64,000 nt of DNA from the NCBI GenBank assembly GCA_965285935.1, contig OZ260667.1, positions 20,770,001 to 20,834,000 of the forward strand. Reading direction: 5' to 3'. Origin of the DNA: Ophelia neglecta (taxonomy: Eukaryota). Shown here piece by piece: positions 7,301 through 19,800 of the stretch. The translations under genes and the position numbers were made by a program. The notes beneath the pieces were generated by a model that did not search any database, was not told the DNA's origin, and was given only the letters and a program-made list of their open reading frames with translations. Every line of letters starts with the position of its first letter. Within the stretch, counting starts at the first letter, position 1.

Positions 7301-8453
7301 CGGAGCATACATTTAAACATTAAGAACAAAAAACTTAATCAATCACGACTTTCTCAGGTTTATATGAGAGTCGCATTCACATTGAACATTTTAATTAGGA
7401 TGTTTGTAAGGCTTAATAGTTGTTTAGTATGCGCACGGCACATTTTTATTTTTGACAAATCTGACTAAACAAGGATTCAGTAGGGCTAGTCACCGGTCGA
7501 AGATAGAATGACATCGTCGCGACAAAAATAAAATCGTCTGTAGCAGAACGATAAATTGTGTTAGGAGATGAGAACACATTAAACTCCTTGCCTTTTATTA
7601 AAGATCATTTTATTTTTGGGATTTATTTCTTTCCTGTTCTATTATAATAATAAATTTCTTTTTTATTATCATTTATGCCATAATTTTGCTTCTTTACGTA
7701 TTTTATAGCTGTAGTTTTGTCAAAAGTCCAAATTTGTTTAATCTAAACCATCAATATGAGCCCCATGCTGCCTATTGCTCTACTAAACATATTATAGATA
7801 TTTGATTATGAACCAGATACGGAAACTAGGCCTATTACCCTTTAGCAAATTTGACCAAAACACACTGCTCATCGCAAAATTTGGTAAAATGAGTATATTG
7901 TATTCCCGGTTCCCAGCAACCACGTCGTCAACTTATCCTTTTAGGGATCAGTATTTCACGGACATGATCTTGAAAATTTAGTATTACACATTCATGACAC
8001 TTTTTACTGTTTTTTTTTTCATTCAATCGTACTTACCATAGCAAACAAGGTACATGCTATAGATTCCATCGTTGGTATTTATAATATATACAAACCGCCA
8101 TAACCCGGGCAGCCTAAACTGCGTAACTAATTAATCAAGTTAATGATCCAATAAGTTTGAAACTTTAAGTGTGACTGATTACATGAACAGATAATGCAAA
8201 CTAAAGAGCATTGTAAACCGAAGAAAAGCAGATTTCATTTATTCATTTATTTCAAATTTATACATGAGTTACGGGGATTTCAATGTTGCAACAAGATACT
8301 TTTTTATGGTGTCTTAATTGGAATAATAATGTTAATGCGAAAGGGCATGCCCAGGCGTTTTTTTTAGATTATATGGCGCCCTCCAATATCTGGCCTTGTA
8401 CTTAAGCTATCAATTCCCAATAATGATACTATTCTGATTTATGTTTGGGGCAA

Positions 8454-10346
8454 TTAGCCCTTGTATATGTTGGTGTATTGTCCACAGGAGACTGCTAATA
8501 TCCTGTTAGAATGGTCAAATGTCACGTGACTAGGACTGCCATCTAAATCTTTAGCAGTTAAAAGTACCTGCCACCTAGCAGTGTCATGTTCGCTCCAAAA
8601 AGCAACCAATCGTCCACGGTCACAAACGACCAGCCTCCCCGCCGGATCTGTGCTTAGCCCGGTCGATGAGTCCAGTTGGCCTTCACCTCCGCATATCTTC
8701 AGGAGCTGCCCCGTTATTGTGTAGAGAGAAACACTGTTTTTTTCGGTGTCAGAGACAGCAATGATGGAGTGACCAATGCCATGGACAGTCCCAGTATGAA
8801 GGCCACCGATGGCAGAAACCCCAAACTCAACGATCGGAATCTTCTTTAATGGATCTATAACTAAAATGCGATTAGCCTCCCTACTTCCTACTACATATAA
8901 GTGGTTATCTTTGCAATAGGAAACAGCAGAAAGTTGATGACCGCACTTAATCATATCACATGCGTACCCTTCCTTATCCATCCTCAATAATGTGTCCTTC
9001 ACAGCAACAAGATAAAGACATTTTTTGTCATCTAGTGCTATCCCTGAGCACGCTTTACCTTCTTCGCCATGCACAGAAAATTCGTGGTTTATTTTCCCAT
9101 TATACTTGAAGGATTTAACTCCTGGCCAATGAGGGCAAACTAGCAGTCGTTTATGACTAGAGTCAGTTGTGAGACCTGCTATATTCCCAGTGTTTATTGA
9201 TAATATATTCATTGGTTTGACAAATGGCGTGAACTTGAGGGTTACTCTCGCCCACTCTGTGTGATATTTTGTATCGATGGCAGCTAATTTTTTTTTTATG
9301 CCTCGGATGATTTCCATGTATGCGTCATCCATGATCGGGACCTTGTATTCAAAATCATTTGCTTCGTATTCAAACTTTCCAATGTACTGTTGTGATATTT
9401 CTTTATCTTTGAGAATTATTTCAAGGGCAGAGGGTGCACCTGCTAGGAGTGTATTGATGCCGAGGACAGTCTGCGCATGTGTGGCGTTGAACTCCTGTAC
9501 CTTGTTGTCTAGTGAGCGAAGTTTATCAATTCCGTCCGATATATTGCTTTTTATACTTAATTGAATATTTTGCATGCGAGCTTCCAATTTTTTTAACTCT
9601 GTTCGAGCGCTATCGACACTATCGAGTAGTTTATGTTGAGCACATTCTAATCCTTTCACCTTGCTTCTCAAAGATTCAAGTTCACTATTAGGAACAGTGT
9701 AACCAGCACACTTTTTGGCTAATCTGTTGAGATGCTCACGACTTTTTTTAGCCATTTCTTGGATGTCCTTGATTTCGTGTTCTTGATGCTTATCCATGAA
9801 ACAAACGGAACATATTCCATCCGAACAGGTGTCACAGAAAAGATTCTTGTGCTCGTTTGGGTGGGTTGAACAGAAGTCGTCAGGTATAATGGAAAGAGAA
9901 GTGTGGCCAATAAAGTGTTCTAGGCCTTTGTGCTTAGATTTTCCCACGTCACAATAGTATTTGTTACATTTCTGACAATACAAGGAAGCGACATGTTTAC
10001 TCCCTGTGCAGAGCTGACAATATTTGGATGCTCCTAAAAGTTCAGTACATTTCTTCGACTCTTTGATGAAGCTCGAAATATGAGACTGCAGTTGATTAGC
10101 CAGAATTGACATCGGCAAATCGCTGACACCGTTAGCCGTAAGCTCTGTAACATGCCTGCACGAAGGACAAGTCACATGACCCAAGGTATGATTACTCGCA
10201 ATGCCTATAAAGCATACTTTACAAAAAGTATGCCCACATTTAAGAATGTAAGGTCCCGACATTTTCTCGAGACACACCGGACAGTCCAATAGATTATATA
10301 TGTCGTTGGTATCGATGAATCCCCCATAAACATTAGAGGCTGCCAT
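8454..10346 (-). CDS. TRIM E3 ubiquitin ligase (RING, two B-boxes, coiled coil, degenerate NHL/beta-propeller), single coding exon, 630 aa
   Basis: RING CPVC...CGHTFCKVC...CPSCR; B-box1 CQLC...CQKCNKYYCD...H...H; B-box2 CSTH...CDTC...CSVC...HQEH; heptad-rich middle; NHL-like repeats (GQLDSSTGLSTDPAGRLVVCD, IAVSDTEKNSVSLY). ATG at 10346 lies just downstream of a splice acceptor (tgtatttgtag, 10370-10380), so the 5'UTR is probably spliced. Minus-strand AATAAA at ~8238-8251. Confidence 0.93.
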   Translation of the reverse strand: MAASNVYGGFIDTNDIYNLLDCPVCLEKMSGPYILKCGHTFCKVCFIGIASNHTLGHVTCPSCRHVTELTANGVSDLPMSILANQLQSHISSFIKESKKCTELLGASKYCQLCTGSKHVASLYCQKCNKYYCDVGKSKHKGLEHFIGHTSLSIIPDDFCSTHPNEHKNLFCDTCSDGICSVCFMDKHQEHEIKDIQEMAKKSREHLNRLAKKCAGYTVPNSELESLRSKVKGLECAQHKLLDSVDSARTELKKLEARMQNIQLSIKSNISDGIDKLRSLDNKVQEFNATHAQTVLGINTLLAGAPSALEIILKDKEISQQYIGKFEYEANDFEYKVPIMDDAYMEIIRGIKKKLAAIDTKYHTEWARVTLKFTPFVKPMNILSINTGNIAGLTTDSSHKRLLVCPHWPGVKSFKYNGKINHEFSVHGEEGKACSGIALDDKKCLYLVAVKDTLLRMDKEGYACDMIKCGHQLSAVSYCKDNHLYVVGSREANRILVIDPLKKIPIVEFGVSAIGGLHTGTVHGIGHSIIAVSDTEKNSVSLYTITGQLLKICGGEGQLDSSTGLSTDPAGRLVVCDRGRLVAFWSEHDTARWQVLLTAKDLDGSPSHVTFDHSNRILAVSCGQYTNIYKG

Positions 10347-11689
10347 TATCAACAACCAAGCATACGGACCTACAAATACATCAGTACTGTTATAGGGACA
10401 CTTCCTTCTTGATAACTCAAGGGCGATAAAGCGGGACGGAACTACTTAGGAGTGTTTACACACTGTCTGTCTAATACTGATCAGGGTCCCCTTTATCGGT
10501 ATGTATCGGCATGCAGTTTATTCATTGCATGACGGGTTCAAAAATTCTTCTCTCTACTTATTGAAAGTAGATTGGAAAACTGTGAATGTTGGCAGTCATG
10601 AACCAGCGGCCACACCTTTGGAGTGGTTTGCCCCTGTAATTATGAGTCATTGCTTCTTACCATAATTTTAAAACAACTTTGAATGCGTTTATCATATTGG
10701 GGTATAGTGTATTGTTAACGCTGTTGCACATAGGATTCATTATTAGCGTTAAAATTGGCCACTTAATGGGTGGTGATTGATTGTTGCATTAATCTTGTCT
10801 GTATATTTTTGTGATTTTTTGTCATCACGTTGTTTAATATTTGCCTGGGATTGATTTGACTATAGTTTTGTTCTCATTTTACTAATAATAAGGCTGGACC
10901 CCTCGAAAGAATAGCAGCGCTGAAAGGGTATCACAGGGTCAAGACTTTAGATAATTTAACAAATGTTTCAGTGTCGTTAAGGGGAACTGGTTTAATTGCA
11001 AACCATTGCATTCCGCCGATGTTTTAAGATTATACAAGACACATTCATATATAAATATGTATGGTCATCTATATTGCACACTGTGAAGTGAACGCGATAA
11101 AGTAAAATGAAGATTTACGTAGTGCAAAATAAATAGGTTAAAAGTTTTATCAAGTACGGCATAGTAATTGTTATAAACAAAGGTAACATTCATATAGTAG
11201 TCCAGAAACCTTTTCGGGTACTGCAAAATTTTGCGTGTCACATGTCTGAATTTGGCCTATCACGTGATAGTATACATTTAAACATAGAACAATCGGATGT
11301 TTCTGTCGGCTGAAAGGCCAAAAGAACTAATTAATGCAATTTGTAGTTTGTTTAATGAAAATGATATGCCGTAAACGTTGTTGTATTTATTGGTGTATAT
11401 GGTACAGCAAATTCTACGTTTGAGTTTCACTAATATAAGATATTTCAAAATGGTCTAAAAATCCACCCACGCTGTTGACTGTTGCAGCACGTAGGCAATG
11501 AATACTTTCTTGTATAATTAGCTTGTATAATACAGCGTATCAAATATTGCATTAAACTACTCAATAACCTAACCACGACAATAACCTAATTTCAGTAACA
11601 AATGATAGAATGGAAACCTAGGCACTAGACCCGAGGCACTAGAGGATTTAGCGTTGGGGTAATAAAGCTTCTTTGCCATTATATGTCTT

Positions 11690-14600
11690 TTAAAAGCCAT
11701 ATCCACCGTGTTTTTTGATAAGATGGTCATAGCACTCCTGGGAAGTTTTAAAGAACTCCATGCACACCCAGCAAATACTCTGATTGCAGGAACCACATGT
11801 GATACGATTACAACCGTCTATCTTCTCGATCCCGATCTTACACGAGGGACATTTCTTCCTTCTTTTCGGCTCTTCATTGATCCATTCATTTAACTTGAAT
11901 GTGTCTGCGGCCGCTTGTTCACATGTGAGGAATTTATGATAGCTATTCAGACACTTTGGACATAGTTTCTTGTTGCAGAAGCAACAGGCTAGGCAGTCGA
12001 CGAGCTGGGTCTGATGTCGACGACATACTCCTGGACAGTTTAGACGAGAACAGAATCGATATGTATCAGGGTTGCGCCCAACAAAATCTCGTACCAATGC
12101 ACTCAAAATTCTTTTGAAACTGACTAGCCGAAGTCTAGTGACAATGTTAAGTATGTCGAAAGCACACATCGGCTGATTGTCATGCGCACACAGAACCGGA
12201 AATGATGTATTATTGACAGCTTCTTCGATCTGCATTTTCAAACATTCTAAACAATAAACATGTCCACATCCTTCAAGTACATAGGAATCGTCATCGAGCG
12301 AGATATCTACAAAACATGATACGCATGTACAATCTGCCGGAGGGTTAGAAGGCTGGTAAATATCACAAGTTTGGTCTGGTTCTTTCATATGGGTATCGAT
12401 GAGTCCTTCAATTGCTTTACCTCGTGTCTTATATACTAAAGATGGTTGAAAATAAGTTTCATTTGGCCCTAGATATTGGCATTGAAGCTTCGTACCCATG
12501 GTTAATAAAAAGTCGTTAGGCAGACCGTCTCCTTTTGGATCAATCAAAAAGGCCGGTTGATCGTTCCCAGATAGCTTATTCTGCAGCTGTTCTACTGCAT
12601 TTGTTTTGTTCACCCTGTTTCCATAAATGAGCAGTTTGTTTGAGAGGGCACTGACCGTGATACAGGTATTGGTCTGGCGCTCGACGAGACGCCGAAATGC
12701 ATCTCCACTGCGAGACATCATTCGCTGTGCGTTCACACGAGAGACTTTTAGAATAACGGCAGCAACTGTTTCTTTGAGGCGAACCCGCATTTCTACACAT
12801 GCCTGCTGTGTATATCCGGTCACTTTTAGACCGACTCTGCCATTTTCCGATACTTTCAGCTCATACGCCGCTCGGTACTTATCAGATAAACGAAAATTCT
12901 CTAATCTAGCTATCACGGTGGATTGTATAACCAGATACAGACGTGGCTTGAAGTAAACAGTAAGCGACTTGAGTCTAGTATCGACCTCATTCTGGTTGTC
13001 TATCTGAACGGGTAGGCCACCGGATGCAAATTCCTTCAACATCTCAACGCCCCGATGCGCAGTGGTATGGTCAGCGAATGAGACATGCGCACGCACCAGT
13101 CCGCGTTTCTTGTCTTCCGGTCCTGCTATGACATTAACCGTGACCTTGTCCTCAGAAAGATCATCTAGAACACGACATATAGTTGCTCTGACCATGGCTT
13201 CGTCGCCATCAGTCACCCTGGGCTTGGAGTATCGGTCTGTGTGCACTCTCCACGTCAAAGTCAGGAAAAGATTGTCAGAAAAATGGCAAAGAGGATGTTC
13301 CAAAGTGTCGTTTGGTATGCTTTCTCTTATATAAAAAGGAAAGGATCGTTTCCGACTCTCTTCTAACAGCGTTCGCAAGGTATCTATTGATGTCGTCGAG
13401 ATGTACCCTAATATATCATCCTGGCTGTCGTCTGCAGCAGGGCCTGGTGTCCAAAGGGATTTAATACCTGTAAAGTTCTTCAGTATCGACAAGACGCCAG
13501 CCCACGTTATTTCAACTCCAGCGATGGCTTTTATTACTGCAGATTGAGATTCTCCTGGGAACAGAAACGTCTGGCATTGTATGCCAGAACTGACGCTGAT
13601 ACTAAGCTGGCTGAAGGTATCTGGATAAGGCAACTGAACGGTCTCCGAGGCCAAGGTCTGGCGAATGGCGGCAATCTCTGCCTCTAGGAGTGCTCTAATA
13701 TCAGCATGGTGAGATGCACGGCAGTACACCCGGAGACTGTCACTTATAGGATGCACCTCAACTACCAAACACGAGGCCTTCCCACATATTTGCAGAGCTT
13801 TGTTACTTAGACTGTCACTTTTCCGGGATCCCCAGCTCTTCACCAGTCTGCCGGTTGTAACATGACCTATATAATTTATCTCCATCCGTTGCAGAAATTC
13901 TTGTTCGGGTCGGTCGTTGCTCGCCTTGTCCATTGTGTCCAGCAGGACATCAGGCGCAAGTTGGAGAGGCACAACGAACAGTAGAGAAGCCTCCACTGAA
14001 ACTTTAGGATGAGAAAATACCTCATTCTTCTCATTTATAACATTCGGCTCGGTGGTTTCGAGTAGAGGAACTACGTACTGGGGACTCTTGGCATAGAATC
14101 GTAAGACAGACGTTTCAGTTGCTCTGACCAGTGTCCCAGTCGATAACTTTCGATAGCCAATAATGTCGTGGCCCATGTAAGCGCACATATTCTTCGCAAA
14201 ATTACGCAACAAAATATCTATCAATGAGTTTTTCATCGTTACTAAATTGGCACGGAAGTTCAGATCAGGTAGATTGCTGCTCCTCTCTTTGAGTAGGTTA
14301 TAACTCCTCTGTACTTCTTCCTCGATTGTTGCCAGCAGCTTTCCATCTAAGCTATTGTCGCAGAGCCACGCTGTTATGTCTCCATTCGTGGCACGAAGTT
14401 CGTTCACCCAGGCACGCATCGCGTTCAGAAGAACAAAAACGTCACCGTCGACATCGGCAAACTTAGCAATAGCGACAAAGTCGTGTTTGTCCTTTCGCCG
14501 GAGGACTGATCCTATGTTATGTGTACGAGCCGCATAAATTATCAGACCCTCGAGAAGAACATTTTGTCCAGCGCATTCCAGAAGGAAATTTGAGTCGTCA

Positions 14601-14806
14601 TCTTTCAAATCTTCACTATCCACAGGAATGGAAGCAGGGTGAGATTTATGACGTCCTCGTGATAATGTGTCCTGTCGCCGCCATTTGGAGCTGTCTTGTG
14701 ATTTCCGGTTCCAAAATTTAATTTCAGGACCACTTTCTATCATGTGAGACCTTTTAGGACGAGCTCCTTCCCCACTGCCGAAAGTTCCAGTTTTGATGCT
14801 AGCCAT
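11690..14806 (-). CDS. RBR (RING1-IBR-RING2) E3 ubiquitin ligase related to the C-terminal two thirds of DEAH11/DEAH12-type helicase-RBR proteins; HA2/OB-like, RRM/KH-like and RBR domains; single coding exon, ~1038 aa
   Basis: RING1 CVSC...CGHVYCLEC...FPVLC (~12325-12160); IBR FCSRLNC...CCFCNKKLCPKC...H...C; RING2 CPSCKIGIEKIDGCNRITCGSCNQSICWVC with the DEAH12-type tail ECYDHL...HGG. N-terminal part resembles HA2 (EGLIIYAA...GSVLRR, F...DGDVFVLLNAMRAW, WLCDNSL) and the OB-like NMCAYMGHDIIGY region. First ATG at 14806; minus-strand AATAAA at ~11386. Confidence 0.9.
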   Translation of the reverse strand: MASIKTGTFGSGEGARPKRSHMIESGPEIKFWNRKSQDSSKWRRQDTLSRGRHKSHPASIPVDSEDLKDDDSNFLLECAGQNVLLEGLIIYAARTHNIGSVLRRKDKHDFVAIAKFADVDGDVFVLLNAMRAWVNELRATNGDITAWLCDNSLDGKLLATIEEEVQRSYNLLKERSSNLPDLNFRANLVTMKNSLIDILLRNFAKNMCAYMGHDIIGYRKLSTGTLVRATETSVLRFYAKSPQYVVPLLETTEPNVINEKNEVFSHPKVSVEASLLFVVPLQLAPDVLLDTMDKASNDRPEQEFLQRMEINYIGHVTTGRLVKSWGSRKSDSLSNKALQICGKASCLVVEVHPISDSLRVYCRASHHADIRALLEAEIAAIRQTLASETVQLPYPDTFSQLSISVSSGIQCQTFLFPGESQSAVIKAIAGVEITWAGVLSILKNFTGIKSLWTPGPAADDSQDDILGYISTTSIDTLRTLLEESRKRSFPFYIRESIPNDTLEHPLCHFSDNLFLTLTWRVHTDRYSKPRVTDGDEAMVRATICRVLDDLSEDKVTVNVIAGPEDKKRGLVRAHVSFADHTTAHRGVEMLKEFASGGLPVQIDNQNEVDTRLKSLTVYFKPRLYLVIQSTVIARLENFRLSDKYRAAYELKVSENGRVGLKVTGYTQQACVEMRVRLKETVAAVILKVSRVNAQRMMSRSGDAFRRLVERQTNTCITVSALSNKLLIYGNRVNKTNAVEQLQNKLSGNDQPAFLIDPKGDGLPNDFLLTMGTKLQCQYLGPNETYFQPSLVYKTRGKAIEGLIDTHMKEPDQTCDIYQPSNPPADCTCVSCFVDISLDDDSYVLEGCGHVYCLECLKMQIEEAVNNTSFPVLCAHDNQPMCAFDILNIVTRLRLVSFKRILSALVRDFVGRNPDTYRFCSRLNCPGVCRRHQTQLVDCLACCFCNKKLCPKCLNSYHKFLTCEQAAADTFKLNEWINEEPKRRKKCPSCKIGIEKIDGCNRITCGSCNQSICWVCMEFFKTSQECYDHLIKKHGGYGF

Positions 14807-16606
14807 TTCTAATGGATATGTTCGCCTGGATGAAGTCTTTTGAAAGACAAGAGGTGACACCCATTAAATAAGAATATAATACCATTTGTTCTGAGGAAAG
14901 TAACCATTAAGAGATTTTACATGTCTCTCCTAAGATGGTATGGCAGAAGCACTTTCCATATACTTACTTGAATATATTTTTCTTATTCTCATTCTCATAT
15001 TACAAAGTTAGGCAATTGGTAAGACACTAAATTAAGTTCATTTATGTTTGATGGTTCTTTGATGGTGGCAATGAAATTTCTATAGCAATTATATCCCTTT
15101 TATCTTTTTTAAAGTATAATGTATAAAAGCGAATTGACAATCATTGGAATGAGTGAAGGAGCTGGGTTCACGTTGTTCAGGCGCTGTAAACAGTAATCAT
15201 GTAAAATGGCAGGTTTGAAAGTGTGCAGACTTGATCTGCATTCTAGCAAAAGGGAGAAATAAAAATGACCTCCAATAGTCTATTATTGGTTGATCTAGAA
15301 AGTTCCTCATATAGGCTAGTGATCAAACGAAAAGTTCTGTACTGCAAACTACTTCAAATAAGTCGTCAGACACTCACAACTGAACCGTATATCAGCGGTG
15401 TACAGTTACCCTGAGAGCGCTGATTGATTAAAGTAAATTGCCCTTCACTTTACACTTTGTTCTACCATTGAGTATTTTTCAACGGCTACCTTAGCGGAAT
15501 CTCAGTATCCCTGCCAAATTACAAAATACATGTATATACATTTCACTTCATGTACATACATGTAAATTATTAAAATTATCATTTACCTTTTTAATAGAGG
15601 CCAACTCCACTATATGAATTCAGTATTTCTTAACGTGCCACTGATGTCGGCTTTCCTTGGCCGCTGCAATTCTTTAAAATACATTTCACAAGAAATTGTT
15701 ATTTATATTGGTGATCCCGTCTAGCCAGATGGAGGCTGACGGTGCAATACACTGGTTTTTCGTAAGCTTGTGCAATGCCCATGGAGCCATTGCTGGGAAT
15801 TCCCCTTTGACGTCATACTATAGAAATCACAATTAAAGTAGCATATTGAAATATATACAGTCAGTCGTGGACCTATCAATCTCCTAATTCTCTCCAGAGT
15901 AGAGTAGTATTGCATATTGTACAGCTATGTAGTAGGCCCGTAAAAATGCATCGAAAAAGCAAAACGGGAAACTGAGACAGCAGTATAAATGAAAGAACGT
16001 GTGAGTGTCGACATGTGCAGACACTAGGCGTACAATGGTGGTATTAGCATAAAAATAAATTGTTTTTTATTTCTTTATCCTGTGTAACCCTGTCCGTTTC
16101 CAAACACACAAGTACAGTCGGAACAGACTTTAAGTAAATATATAAGCCTATCTATACTCAGTTATTAAGTTTACAATTTTAAAATGGTATATGAATAAAG
16201 TCATGCGTGGAGGAAAAACCTCATATTAGGCCCATAAAGTAATGCAAACATTGATAGTAAGTTTATGCAGTAAACCTATGGTTGTTCTTTTCGACATTTC
16301 GCGTATCGATCGGAATCACGCGCGAAACTAAACTCATTTCTATTGACTTAAGAATGAAATATATTATGATAAGAAAAGCTGTGGACTTAAAGTTTATCAG
16401 ATAAGTTACCTAGACCTGTGTATAGGCCTGTAACCTTTTTTCAGTACATGAACAGGCAATTTAGACTCAGGTGAACAAGCTAAAACTAAAATAAACCGAT
16501 CATATAAGATGGAACGTCTAGCTGCGGGAGATCATTGTCCTTATAGGTAATAGCTCCAAGAAGGAAATGATTAAAACTCCCTGCGACACAAACACATCAC
16601 GTAGCA

Positions 16607-16612
16607 TATAAA
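16607..16612 (+). promoter_or_regulatory. Candidate TATA box of the second claudin-like gene
   Basis: TATAAA ~225 nt upstream of the ATG at 16833. Confidence 0.3.
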
Positions 16613-16832
16613 GTCAATAAAGTCAGGTAGTATATGGCGATTGCTTTCTCGATGACACAGTCGGAGCGCTGCAGTCGACCAGACAAAGGTGCCATCTGTC
16701 GGCAGCCAATCGCATCACTGCTTGTAGTTCCAATACCTATTCGAATCCATACACAAGCGAAGAGGAGAATATCTTCGCTGTCTGTGTTATAATTCGCTCA
16801 GTTTCGCGACAATTCTCTGTTTCACGTTGGGA

Positions 16833-19800
16833 ATGGCTTCGTGTGTAGGATTAACCGCTCTTCTCTTTTTGCTTTTAGCATTCGTGGGTCTTGCTATCAG
16901 CTTTTTGGCACCTTTTTGGACTCATGATGAAAACTCTAAAGCCGACGAGGGGCTTTGGGGCCGTTGTCAGCCCGCCCTTGAAGGAACCAGTGAACTAGGG
17001 TTGGACCATTTGCAGGGCTGCACCTGGTTCTTCCAGAAAGATTTCGCTTGGGAAAATAGTCTCCCAGGTAAGTTATATTTATTCAATTGTGTCTCTTGGT
17101 AATTTGTCAACAGATATGCTATAAAAGACCGCAAGGTTATTAATTTTCGACAACAGGTAGCAGGTCCATTGGTTGTTATTGTCTAGGTAGGCGAAGCCAG
17201 TGCATTATGTAGCTCAGCATACGGTCGCACTGCCTGTAAGCTTGAAGGTAGTAAATATTTGAATGTCGGCCGATATGTACAGGTGGCTAAACACAGCCAT
17301 AGCTAGTTATGCCAAACCAGCCAAGCACATCAGAAAGGTAGCTTTTACAATCGATTTACCGCCTAGGTCTTTGATCAGGAAACTAGATCAACACCTGTAT
17401 TGCTGCATCGTTTTATCCCCCATTTCTATTGACAATAAGTACATACACCTAAACCTGAAGTTGAAGTTCATCTGTCGTAACATTCCACGGTAATTGTGTT
17501 TGTAACACACTAGTCTGGTGGATACCGAGCTATTTAAATAACTTCCTATTATATCGAAATTTAGCTGAAAGCTTTTGTCACTAAGCTTTGCACTTGGACG
17601 AACGGTTCATTTTGCCTGGACAAAAGCTGTCCATTGTTACGTATACAGAGACTGGTGACTCTCAAAAGAAAACTACAAAGTCGTGACTTTCCTTAGTCGT
17701 TATGTTAAATAATTAGTTGATAGTAGATCGCTCACTGTTGATATTGTGCAAAGTACTTTCTGTTTTATTATTTCCTCCTGACAATATTGTATTAATCTAC
17801 ATCAAAGGCCATGTCCATTGTCATTAATAATGGTGACTATTTGACTGCTCCAGTCCACTTCCCTCTTGAAATAATTCATTGAATAAAAGTTTGGAATAAT
17901 ATTGCATCATCGTGAACATGAGCAGATTGGGAGTCTTTATTGTGTCTAATATTTTATATTCATAATCACTATCATTCTGGAATATTTACAATTCTTAACA
18001 AATCATTTAGTTATTCATAAATATAATTTACTGAGTTCCGGTCATGAGGATTTATTGTACTACAACTTGCATAAAGATTGAACTAATGTCCAGTCGTTTG
18101 TAGTGAGGACAGGAATTCGGAAGCGCGTGGCAGCAGACCCGAACGGTGCTCATATATTCGGAATGTTAGCCACATCCAAATATGAATCAGACCAATATCC
18201 TGTATACTGTACTAGTTTTTAAGCTGCTTTGCATCCGGATATAGCAATTAGGTTTCATTCTGTTCATATATTAGCCTATCATTTTAAAATACTGATCACT
18301 TCCGCAGCATTAATATCGATGATCTTTGCCCTACTTCATGCACACAATCGCTCTGCAGATCGTGCTCAGTTATTGTAAACATGAATGTTGTACCAGCGGC
18401 TGTAGTCCAAAAGTGGAGCCAGTACCCTGCACCAACATTCTGTGTTCAGATCACAGTAACTGGGCGGATATTGCAACCAGTAAATAGGTGAAATAGTTGA
18501 GTAGCCTAATCATACGAATGTGCTGTCGTGCAAATCAGACTGTGATTAATTGATTTAGTGCTCCAGTTTTGACCCAGTATCTACATCTCTCACAGATGCT
18601 CCTATTAGTTGTGCAGCCCAATTATGTTCATGCTTTCACTGTCTCCTTATAGAAGAACACAGTTCATTATTTGATCCCTTGAAGTTGACCCACCTTACCT
18701 CCACCCGAGCTGCCTTCTTTGCTCCGTGAGGGACCTTGGTCACTCGTGGATATGTAGGTCGACTATAAGGGACTCTGTCAGATTCCGTTTTATTGCGACT
18801 CCTTATCGAATGTCATTTTTGACATAATCTGTTTCTATTACAACCTTGTATTGTTTACATAATTGTATAAATAATAACAGTTTTTAGAGGGTTATAAACA
18901 TTAAGCGCGCTGGTACTTGACTTATACCTTGCAAGCCCTTGACATTTTTTATTATTGTTCTTGACACAAGCCCTTGAGGTAATGTTTGCCCTGCTTGCGG
19001 CTGCTGGGATATTACTAGTAACACTATACAGTACTGCAGATGAAAGTGTCGACTGGTCAGGAAGCTAGTCTCGGAACAAATGGCAGATATTACTTTTCGC
19101 AAATTTGCTTTTTATTTATACATCATACTACAGACTTCAGTAGTTTAATTATGTATTATTGGTTTATGGTTTTCGGAGAGCAAGCATAGCTGGCGAGGTG
19201 CTTGTCTTAATTATTGAGATAAGGGCGACCACGGTTAAACAATATTATTGTGGTTTAACTTTCGGCTCATCGGTTGTCTATATGTTATTGTTCTAAGCGA
19301 TGTGCTTGATGATCCCGTCAATGTGCCCTTTCCCTTGCTTTGGTAGAATCTCTGAAATTGGCAGAAACAGTCCAATTGTCATATCCCTCGACAGGAGGCA
19401 CAAAACAGCTTCTAAACCGTAGAATGCAGATCAATACAATCGACCTGTCGTGTCCTGTTGAGTATAAACCTTGCCAGGCCCGTGCCCTTCCTTTCACGGT
19501 CTGAGCCAACCTATCTCCATGGCTCCCCGAGATCGATTAAACTCCGGTGTTGTTTTTGCGCGATTAACGTGTCATGCGAATTTGTATCGAACTCAAAGAA
19601 CGTCGCCGAATTGGTGGGTAGAAATAGCGATTGTTATATCGATCAACCACATCAGGTAGCGCCTACCCAGGTTAGCACGTTAGCACGTGTGACTGATGAG
19701 TAGTAAAATCATGTTCTGGTCGAACGAGTTGTAGGACTAAAACATATCTTTAATTAACTGGGGATGTAAGTTTTCATTCGAAAAATACATTTCGTTAATT

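Follow-up and report, generated by a model that had tools for sequence, protein, structure and literature searches.

Ubiquitin ligases of the RING1-IBR-RING2 (RBR) type fused to a DEAH helicase form the 'Helicase' (Plant I) subfamily, which includes Arabidopsis DEAH11 and DEAH12 (Marin 2010, PMC2904391) and soybean GmHELRP1/2 (PMC3904995). Only three RBR subfamilies, the fusion among them, are common to very distant eukaryotes (PMC2904391), DEAH12 has been annotated in clams as a single-copy marker (PMC8765752) and Pfam holds DEAH11-specific domain models; as described in the literature, members of the subfamily are helicase-bearing and longer than 1700 residues. Functional literature on the helicase–RBR fusion is almost nil in the literature searched, where DEAH11 is named in two papers. 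Here we analyse a 64,000-nt stretch of Ophelia neglecta DNA (contig OZ260667.1, 20,770,001–20,834,000, forward strand; hereafter the window), in which an open reading frame (ORF) at 11690–14806 on the minus strand encodes a 1038-residue protein with the accessory domains and ligase of this subfamily and no helicase motor. We put at about 0.8 the probability that this protein (the query) is a functional, single-coding-exon RBR ligase of the 'Helicase'/DEAH11-12 subfamily, from an old branch that lost RecA1, RecA2 and the winged helix. The same genome carries, on another contig, a full-length paralogue (G000:C2:79230489-79236334 (−), equal to L004 992–6835), encoded as an uninterrupted 1948-residue ORF.

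Ligase module and helicase-derived domains

The frame is uninterrupted over window positions 11690–14860 (−), with its first ATG at 14806, and the protein ends in ...ECYDHLIKKHGGYGF. The window is intron-rich eukaryotic DNA of ~40% GC and holds just two ORFs of at least 180 residues in its 64 kb (the RBR gene and an adjacent TRIM-like ORF), so a 3.1-kb open frame lies far beyond chance. AlphaFold2, built on 69 relatives, models the whole protein with a mean predicted local distance difference test (pLDDT) of 83.8 and a predicted template modelling score of 0.78. The gene and its domains map as follows (aa, amino-acid residues).

11690–14806 (−): complete single-exon coding sequence, 1038 codons plus a stop at 11690–11692 (ORF reading, Pfam, AlphaFold2 model)
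14618–14806 (−): N-terminal leader, aa 1–63, disordered and poorly conserved (pLDDT 31–38)
14198–14617 (−): ratchet-like helical bundle, C-terminal half of HA2, aa ~64–203 (VIA-align, Foldseek, helicase-only profile)
13895–14197 (−): OB-fold of DEAH helicases, aa ~204–304 (VIA-align; the paralogue's Pfam OB_NTP_bind maps to aa 196–289)
13622–13894 (−): alpha/beta domain, aa ~305–395, colinear with helicase forms (AlphaFold2 models, hhalign)
13307–13621 (−): RRM-like domain 1, aa ~396–500 (VIA-align to RRMs; the paralogue's RRM_1 maps to aa 423–482)
12998–13294 (−): RRM-like domain 2, aa ~505–603, with 'RAHVSFADHTTAHRG' (beta-alpha-beta-beta-alpha-beta order in models)
12563–12994 (−): two type-I KH-like domains, aa ~605–748 (weak Pfam matches, VIA-align)
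12377–12553 (−): third KH_DEAH11-type domain, aa ~752–810, partly of low confidence (the paralogue's Pfam KH_DEAH11, E 1.5e-16, maps to aa 754–808)
11702–12331 (−): RING1-IBR-RING2, aa 826–1035 (Pfam, ARIH2 alignment, relatives' alignment)

The C terminus was read as RING1-IBR-RING2 by the first-pass annotation, made from the letters of the window, and the uninterrupted frame, Pfam and the alignment to ARIH2 all bear this out. Pfam places IBR and IBR_1 above cut-off and its RING models match; the module aligns to ARIH2 over aa 818–1024 (E 2.5e-10) and also to HOIL-1, RNF216 and ARIH1. Its zinc ligands are complete and in order, in columns that are invariant in alignments of 26 and of 69 relatives. 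The catalytic Cys999, encoded at 11810–11812 and lying in '...DGCNRITC', aligns with the cysteine of 'GGCNHMQC' in ARIH2 and is invariant in the family. By domain set and catalytic cysteine, the predicted protein is a member of the RBR class.

Profiles and the structure model together indicate that the N-terminal part of the protein is derived from a DEAH helicase. Superposed with VIA-align, model residues 63–304 match Prp16, Prp43, Prp2 and DHX15 with Z 20–21 and a root-mean-square deviation of 2.6–3.6 Å over 195–218 residues (Z 20.6 for Prp43 527–746). The matched ranges begin at the ratchet (Prp43 527–746, DHX15 566–779, and DHX8 981–1194 in the DHX8 C-terminal domain structure 3i4u), a start point that is read where the reported chain range covers the C-terminal domains only. 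Foldseek, proposed earlier as a check on the model, gives Prp22, DHX8, Prp2, DHX15 and Prp43 as best matches (E ~1e-7), returning the DEAH ratchet–OB fold for 63–304. A ratchet–OB profile made from 16 helicase-bearing relatives only finds aa 74–246 of the query (E 8.8e-19), and when hhalign compares the short relatives with the last 1,060 residues of helicase forms, the two profiles run colinear for 919 columns (probability 100, E 5e-124). The central claim of the first-pass annotation, a helicase-less derivative of a DEAH-helicase/RBR fusion, is upheld by this colinearity and by the Prp43/DHX15/Prp22 fold match, together with the blank core search and the syntenic orthologue described below.

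The same annotation had a low-complexity leader run into HA2-like and OB-like sequence. A disordered 1–63 followed by ratchet and OB over 63–304 agrees with that description, except that of HA2 only the ratchet half, which bears a 'GD..(T)LLN..R.W....W(C)' motif, is present with the OB-fold: HA2_N is absent save for a doubtful match at aa 45–69, and the winged-helix half is gone together with RecA1 and RecA2. The doubtful match is a weak hhalign extension of leader aa 45–69 to the last stretch of the winged-helix domain; it may be a vestige of that domain, and we give it little weight. The leader is 20–107 residues long among clade members. In the OB-fold, comparison with helicase forms confirms that 'ATETSVL' occupies the position of their 'HPSS' motif, as first noticed by eye, and the 40%-identical orthologue retains 'HPSS'.

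Between the OB-fold and the ligase, a second structure model of aa 305–815 (pLDDT 86) is matched best by multi-RRM proteins in Foldseek (Prp24, raver1, HuD, Sxl). VIA-align places RRMs on aa ~418–502 (model residues 114–198) with Z ~8–8.6, and type-I KH domains, single and tandem, on aa ~609–752 with Z 8.7–11.1 (MEX-3C, KSRP, PCBP2, Krr1); Pfam matches in the query fall below cut-off (KH_DEAH11_1st, E 0.042; KH_DEAH11_2nd, E 0.0042). These Z values are moderate, yet they agree with the Pfam families of short relatives. RRM1 is lost altogether in several clade members.

The search for a motor and the upstream interval

A helicase motor had been reported missing from the ORF, and every search agrees. 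Pfam gives no DEAD or Helicase_C match in the 1038-residue protein even at E≤1. A helicase-core hidden Markov model (HMM) built from 67 family members, which scores 704 bits on the full-length paralogue as positive control, finds nothing better than noise (E>2) in six-frame searches of the window with its ORF and of the loci of four relatives (L005–L008). With the full-length paralogue as query, tblastn over the window matches the ORF itself only. The ATPase motifs I, II and VI in two RecA domains that mark DEAH/RHA helicases are absent from the protein by Pfam and core HMM, and neither core HMM nor tblastn detects RecA-coding sequence in the 49 kb upstream of the gene. Two further features lie on that side of the gene.

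14807–16826 (no strand): interval to the divergent claudin-like exon, with no helicase-like coding sequence (tblastn, core HMM)
16827–17102 (+) here, L005 6286–6645 (−) in the orthologue contig: exon 1 of a gene for a small membrane protein that bears the claudin-type motif 'GLW..C...C'

From the ATG to the claudin-like ORF at 16827 is 2,020 bp, close to the ~2 kb given at first, and the interval is free of helicase-like sequence as claimed; the name of the neighbour stands less firmly, Pfam making no claudin call for this exon, which is claudin-like by motif only. An orthologue of 1047 residues, which shares 40% identity with the query from residue 68 through to the C terminus, has the same exon divergently upstream at ~3.5 kb (2.0 kb here), and this shared neighbour bounds the RBR gene upstream. 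The orthologue contig, in another assembly (ERZ25069296), bears three tandem copies of the motor-less ligase separated by spacers of 3–5 kb, with no helicase similarity between or upstream of the three.

The rival most directly concerned holds that exons further upstream still encode the helicase and are spliced to an acceptor just before the ATG, so that the truncation is a single-exon artefact. It draws on acceptor-like AGs at 14837–14838 and 14826–14827, which lie downstream of the in-frame TAA at 14864–14866 and recur as similar sites in relatives, and on a gene structure known from genomic DNA alone; a stronger AG at 14891–14892 is followed by the in-frame TAA. The core HMM and tblastn are nevertheless blank in the 49 kb upstream, in the rest of the window and in the four relatives' loci, a divergent gene stands 2.0 kb upstream here and 3.5 kb in the orthologue, the tandem copies lie 3–5 kb apart with no helicase between them, and the full-length family members found are single ORFs. 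In relatives the acceptor-like sites fall 3–28 nt before the ATG in phase 0 or 1, differing even among paralogous copies; because distances and phases vary in this way, we read them as probably the end of a 5′ untranslated region (UTR) intron just before the ATG. The acceptor suggested earlier near 14826–14838 is accordingly a plausible site whose variability fits a 5′ UTR intron, not a coding junction. Taken together, a helicase hidden on upstream exons is very improbable.

A conserved phase-1 coding intron before the ATG was also considered and rejected, the phase being 0 in P0014 and in orthologue copy 3 and the distances ranging over 3–28 nt. Comparing upstream regions between copies and species by tblastx and blastn reveals no shared upstream coding exon; the similarity found is confined to the claudin-like exon and one 0.25–0.9-kb nucleotide-level repeat between two spacers. 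A relative's contig, L011, was examined as a possible transcript and rejected: it is DNA, being fully colinear with a genomic contig and ending in simple repeats.

Three observations concern the flanks of the coding sequence. The upstream non-coding DNA holds a 69-bp insertion/deletion polymorphism at 14978–15046, seen in contigs of all three DNA runs (one sample). By eye, an out-of-frame ATG at about −58 opens an upstream ORF of ~21 codons whose TAG overlaps the main start (14806–14863 (−)), which is relevant only if the stretch lies in the mRNA. On the other side of the gene there is a candidate, weakly evidenced poly(A) signal.

11386–11391 (−): candidate poly(A) signal AATAAA, ~300 nt past the stop codon

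An old short clade, its paralogue and its neighbours

Relatives were found by exhaustive HMMER search, which returned 4184, the closest being proteins of ~1000 residues; a word-index search with the whole protein gave one match, P0001, which is a piece of a broken copy. All 150 of the nearest representatives belong to the 'Helicase'/DEAH11-12 RBR kind. Among long relatives (1500–2600 aa), 67 of the 68 checked carry the Walker A motif GxGKS/T and all 67 also have DExH/DEAH, a pairing found in 0 of 83 matches shorter than 1250 residues; likewise, none of the 26 short forms scanned with Pfam has DEAD or Helicase_C. Members of the short clade carry Pfam RRM_1, KH_DEAH11, RBD_DEAH11, RRM_DEAH11 and OB_NTP_bind, and their homology starts at one common point, the start of the ratchet, which is the breakpoint that alignment to helicase forms had been expected to map.

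A FastTree phylogeny of the C-terminal 470 residues places the query in a 29-row, all-short clade (support 99), with all 69 helicase forms on the other side. In a quick IQ-TREE analysis of the whole shared region, one branch splits 25 short from 16 helicase rows with a Shimodaira–Hasegawa-like approximate likelihood-ratio (SH-aLRT) support of 100; supports in both trees are SH-like only and the root is the midpoint. On these sequence trees the loss of the motor is old and clade-defining, not local to this genome, since a single branch parts the query's clade, in which every member is short, from all the helicase forms. Faster evolution after motor loss could exaggerate the depth of the clade under midpoint rooting. 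The clade has diversified into 25–29 clusters at ≤50% identity. Elsewhere, other short groups also begin with ratchet–OB (P0091, P0112, P0115, P0124, P0144), one short group is without it, and short rows nested beside helicase forms look like ORF fragments.

The full-length paralogue, which the first-pass annotation had suggested seeking by tblastn and which is indeed in the genome, has the Pfam domains DEAD, Helicase_C, HA2_N, OB_NTP_bind, RRM_1, KH_DEAH11 and RBR, preceded by ~480 residues without domain assignment; its Walker A lies at residue 513. Query aa 114–288 match paralogue residues 953–1136 (pairwise E 5e-7), and the two RBRs are 32% identical. The paralogue is nested deep among helicase forms, for which reason it is not a recent parent of the query. 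That both forms coexist in one genome, with all accessory domains colinear, does invite an alternative in which the motor-less protein is a regulator or decoy of the 1948-residue one: with ratchet–OB, RRM/KH and RBR surfaces in common, it would pair with or compete for the same RNA, cofactors or substrates and modulate that enzyme instead of having its own targets. In DEAH helicases the OB-fold and ratchet are partner-binding surfaces, and the structures matched here include G-patch complexes. The two lineages are, however, only ~20–30% identical and divided by a long, fully supported branch, a divergence at which shared partners are not expected, and the query retains the catalytic cysteine and all zinc ligands, which a pure decoy would not need. 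We consider regulation of the paralogue unlikely.

Selection on the coding sequence looks purifying. Neutral dN/dS (the ratio of non-synonymous to synonymous substitution rates), coupled with no expression, had been named as the outcome that would speak against a working gene; copies 2 and 3 of the ERZ25069296 array, compared with each other, give a value of 0.23, comparisons of the query with the orthologues being saturated. The reads that cover the stretch (the three DNA runs, used here for polymorphisms) give 7 synonymous and 5 non-synonymous single-nucleotide polymorphisms in the coding sequence and a 3-bp deletion that keeps the frame; with the exception of the conservative I474L, every non-synonymous change lies in the leader or a low-confidence loop.

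These data bear on the reading of the gene as a decaying truncated duplicate without function, for example a 5′-truncated retrocopy. The coding sequence is intronless, the HPSS and RRM1 RNP1-like motifs are degenerate and the gene is known from DNA reads alone, all as decay would have it. Intronlessness, however, is no sign of retroposition, because the full-length relatives are intronless too. Moreover, the frame is intact over 3.1 kb and has a syntenic orthologue at 40% identity, the clade as a whole has diversified, synonymous polymorphisms are in excess and the sole indel is in frame alongside the low dN/dS, and the model is confidently folded. A functionless duplicate is hardly credible against this record.

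The three copies in ERZ25069296 are placed as follows.

L005 9965–13238: tandem copy 1
L005 18100–21243: tandem copy 2
L006 10001–13078: tandem copy 3

Copy 1 is broken up into three ORFs (626, 94 and 355 residues) and is either decaying or hit by sequencing errors (the contig is labelled 3x); the other two are 1047 and 1025 residues as called. The start of copy 3 is probably called 37–38 codons too far downstream, an in-frame ATG ('MATFN...') lying upstream in the sequence. The spacers upstream of copies 2 and 3 contain a common block (L005 ~15863–16753, L006 ~7352–7875) of 80–87% nucleotide identity that has no counterpart upstream of copy 1 or of the query. This block may be a repeat, part of a transposon or a non-coding exon common to both copies. 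Beyond the array lies an ASC-channel fragment. At the locus of another relative, P0007 (L008 15851–22943), the flanking ORFs encode reverse transcriptase and GIY-YIG/HTH_animal domains and look like Penelope-type retroelements. In the window itself, the downstream neighbour at 8454–10355 (−) is a second intronless E3 ligase ORF, TRIM-NHL-like and 633 residues long; it contains a coiled coil, and Pfam matches a RING, two B-boxes and, weakly, an NHL repeat.

Proposed function and comparison with known systems

Keeping the original domain order of ratchet, OB, RRM-like and KH-like array and ligase, the protein would use Cys999 to transfer ubiquitin, in the manner of other RBR ligases, with no ATP-driven translocation on RNA. 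The ratchet–OB and RRM/KH array would then act as a static recognition or regulatory platform, whose ligand could be RNA, a ribonucleoprotein (RNP) or a protein partner. Gating of the RBR by this platform is possible, given that known RBR ligases are autoinhibited by accessory domains. We hold RNA as the ligand at somewhat below even odds. More tentatively, the ratchet–OB may have an ATP-independent job of its own, because it has long been kept across the motor-less clade; it might, for example, sense or dock RNA, an RNP or a G-patch-type partner and thereby free the RBR from autoinhibition. If that is true, the clade would represent invertebrate RBR ligases of an undescribed class, gated by nucleic acids or cofactors. 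The tandem expansion seen in one species and the TRIM-NHL-like neighbour make a connection with immunity conceivable.

Several observations weigh against a functional, nucleic-acid-binding ligase of this clade or narrow what can be claimed for it. The residue two after Cys999 is Arg instead of His; members of the short clade carry Arg, Lys, Asn or Gln at this position, and Lys or Arg also occurs in several helicase forms. The RRM1 'WG.VTF' RNP1-like motif is degenerate in the query ('LGYIST') and in its two nearest relatives, and the KH loops hold one Gly in place of GXXG, which is true of the whole family. With 'HPSS' also replaced, nucleic-acid-binding motifs appear weak in the query lineage. 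Acceptor-like sites between the in-frame stop and the ATG leave room for a short, non-helicase upstream coding exon, and expression, transcription start and 5′ exon structure are predictions from genomic DNA alone. The relatives are ORF-type gene calls without taxon labels, which bears on the taxonomic range of the clade.

The literature searched, outside which lies the key animal paper (Marin 2009), contains no description of a motor-less animal branch, and this old group of ligases is apparently undescribed. In other eukaryotes, Atlas lists clusters with IBR plus KH_DEAH11 and/or OB_NTP_bind and no helicase among the three families listed per cluster. A conserved branch without the motor amounts to a natural dissection experiment, in which ratchet–OB and the RRM/KH array are useful to a ligase without ATP-driven translocation, and it offers a smaller, tractable protein for asking what helicase-type RBR ligases recognise. 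It is also a warning for annotation: an invertebrate 'DEAH12-like' model of ~1000 residues is not necessarily a truncated prediction.

Four known systems resemble parts of the query. The MEX-3 family (KH-KH-RING) shares the concept of KH domains joined to a ubiquitin ligase, and the best structural matches of aa ~610–750 are the KH domains of MEX-3C (Z 9.9–11.1); the ligase there is a RING, not an RBR, the proteins as wholes do not share a common descent, and the KH loops of the query are without GXXG. ARIH1/ARIH2, HOIL-1 and RNF216 have the same Cys/His spacing and a catalytic cysteine in the 'GC' motif of RING2 (Foldseek match 8eaz), whereas the query is without an Ariadne, UBL or other known autoinhibitory domain and has Arg, not His, two after the cysteine.

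In DEAH/RHA helicases (Prp43/DHX15, Prp22/DHX8, Prp2, Prp16, DHX9, DHX36), whose ratchet and OB superpose on residues 63–304 with Z 19–21, this module sits over the RecA domains and closes an RNA tunnel, and it is not known to act alone; the query has no motor to close over and has lost 'HPSS'. The closest system is the 'Helicase' (Plant I) RBR subfamily itself, DEAH11/DEAH12 and the animal 'DEAH12-like' proteins, which share the order ratchet–OB–RRM–KH_DEAH11–RBR and are homologous over the shared length; the genome's own 1948-residue member is encoded, like the query, by an intronless coding sequence. From this subfamily the query departs in being without RecA1, RecA2 and the winged helix, and in belonging to a separate, fully supported, all-short clade.

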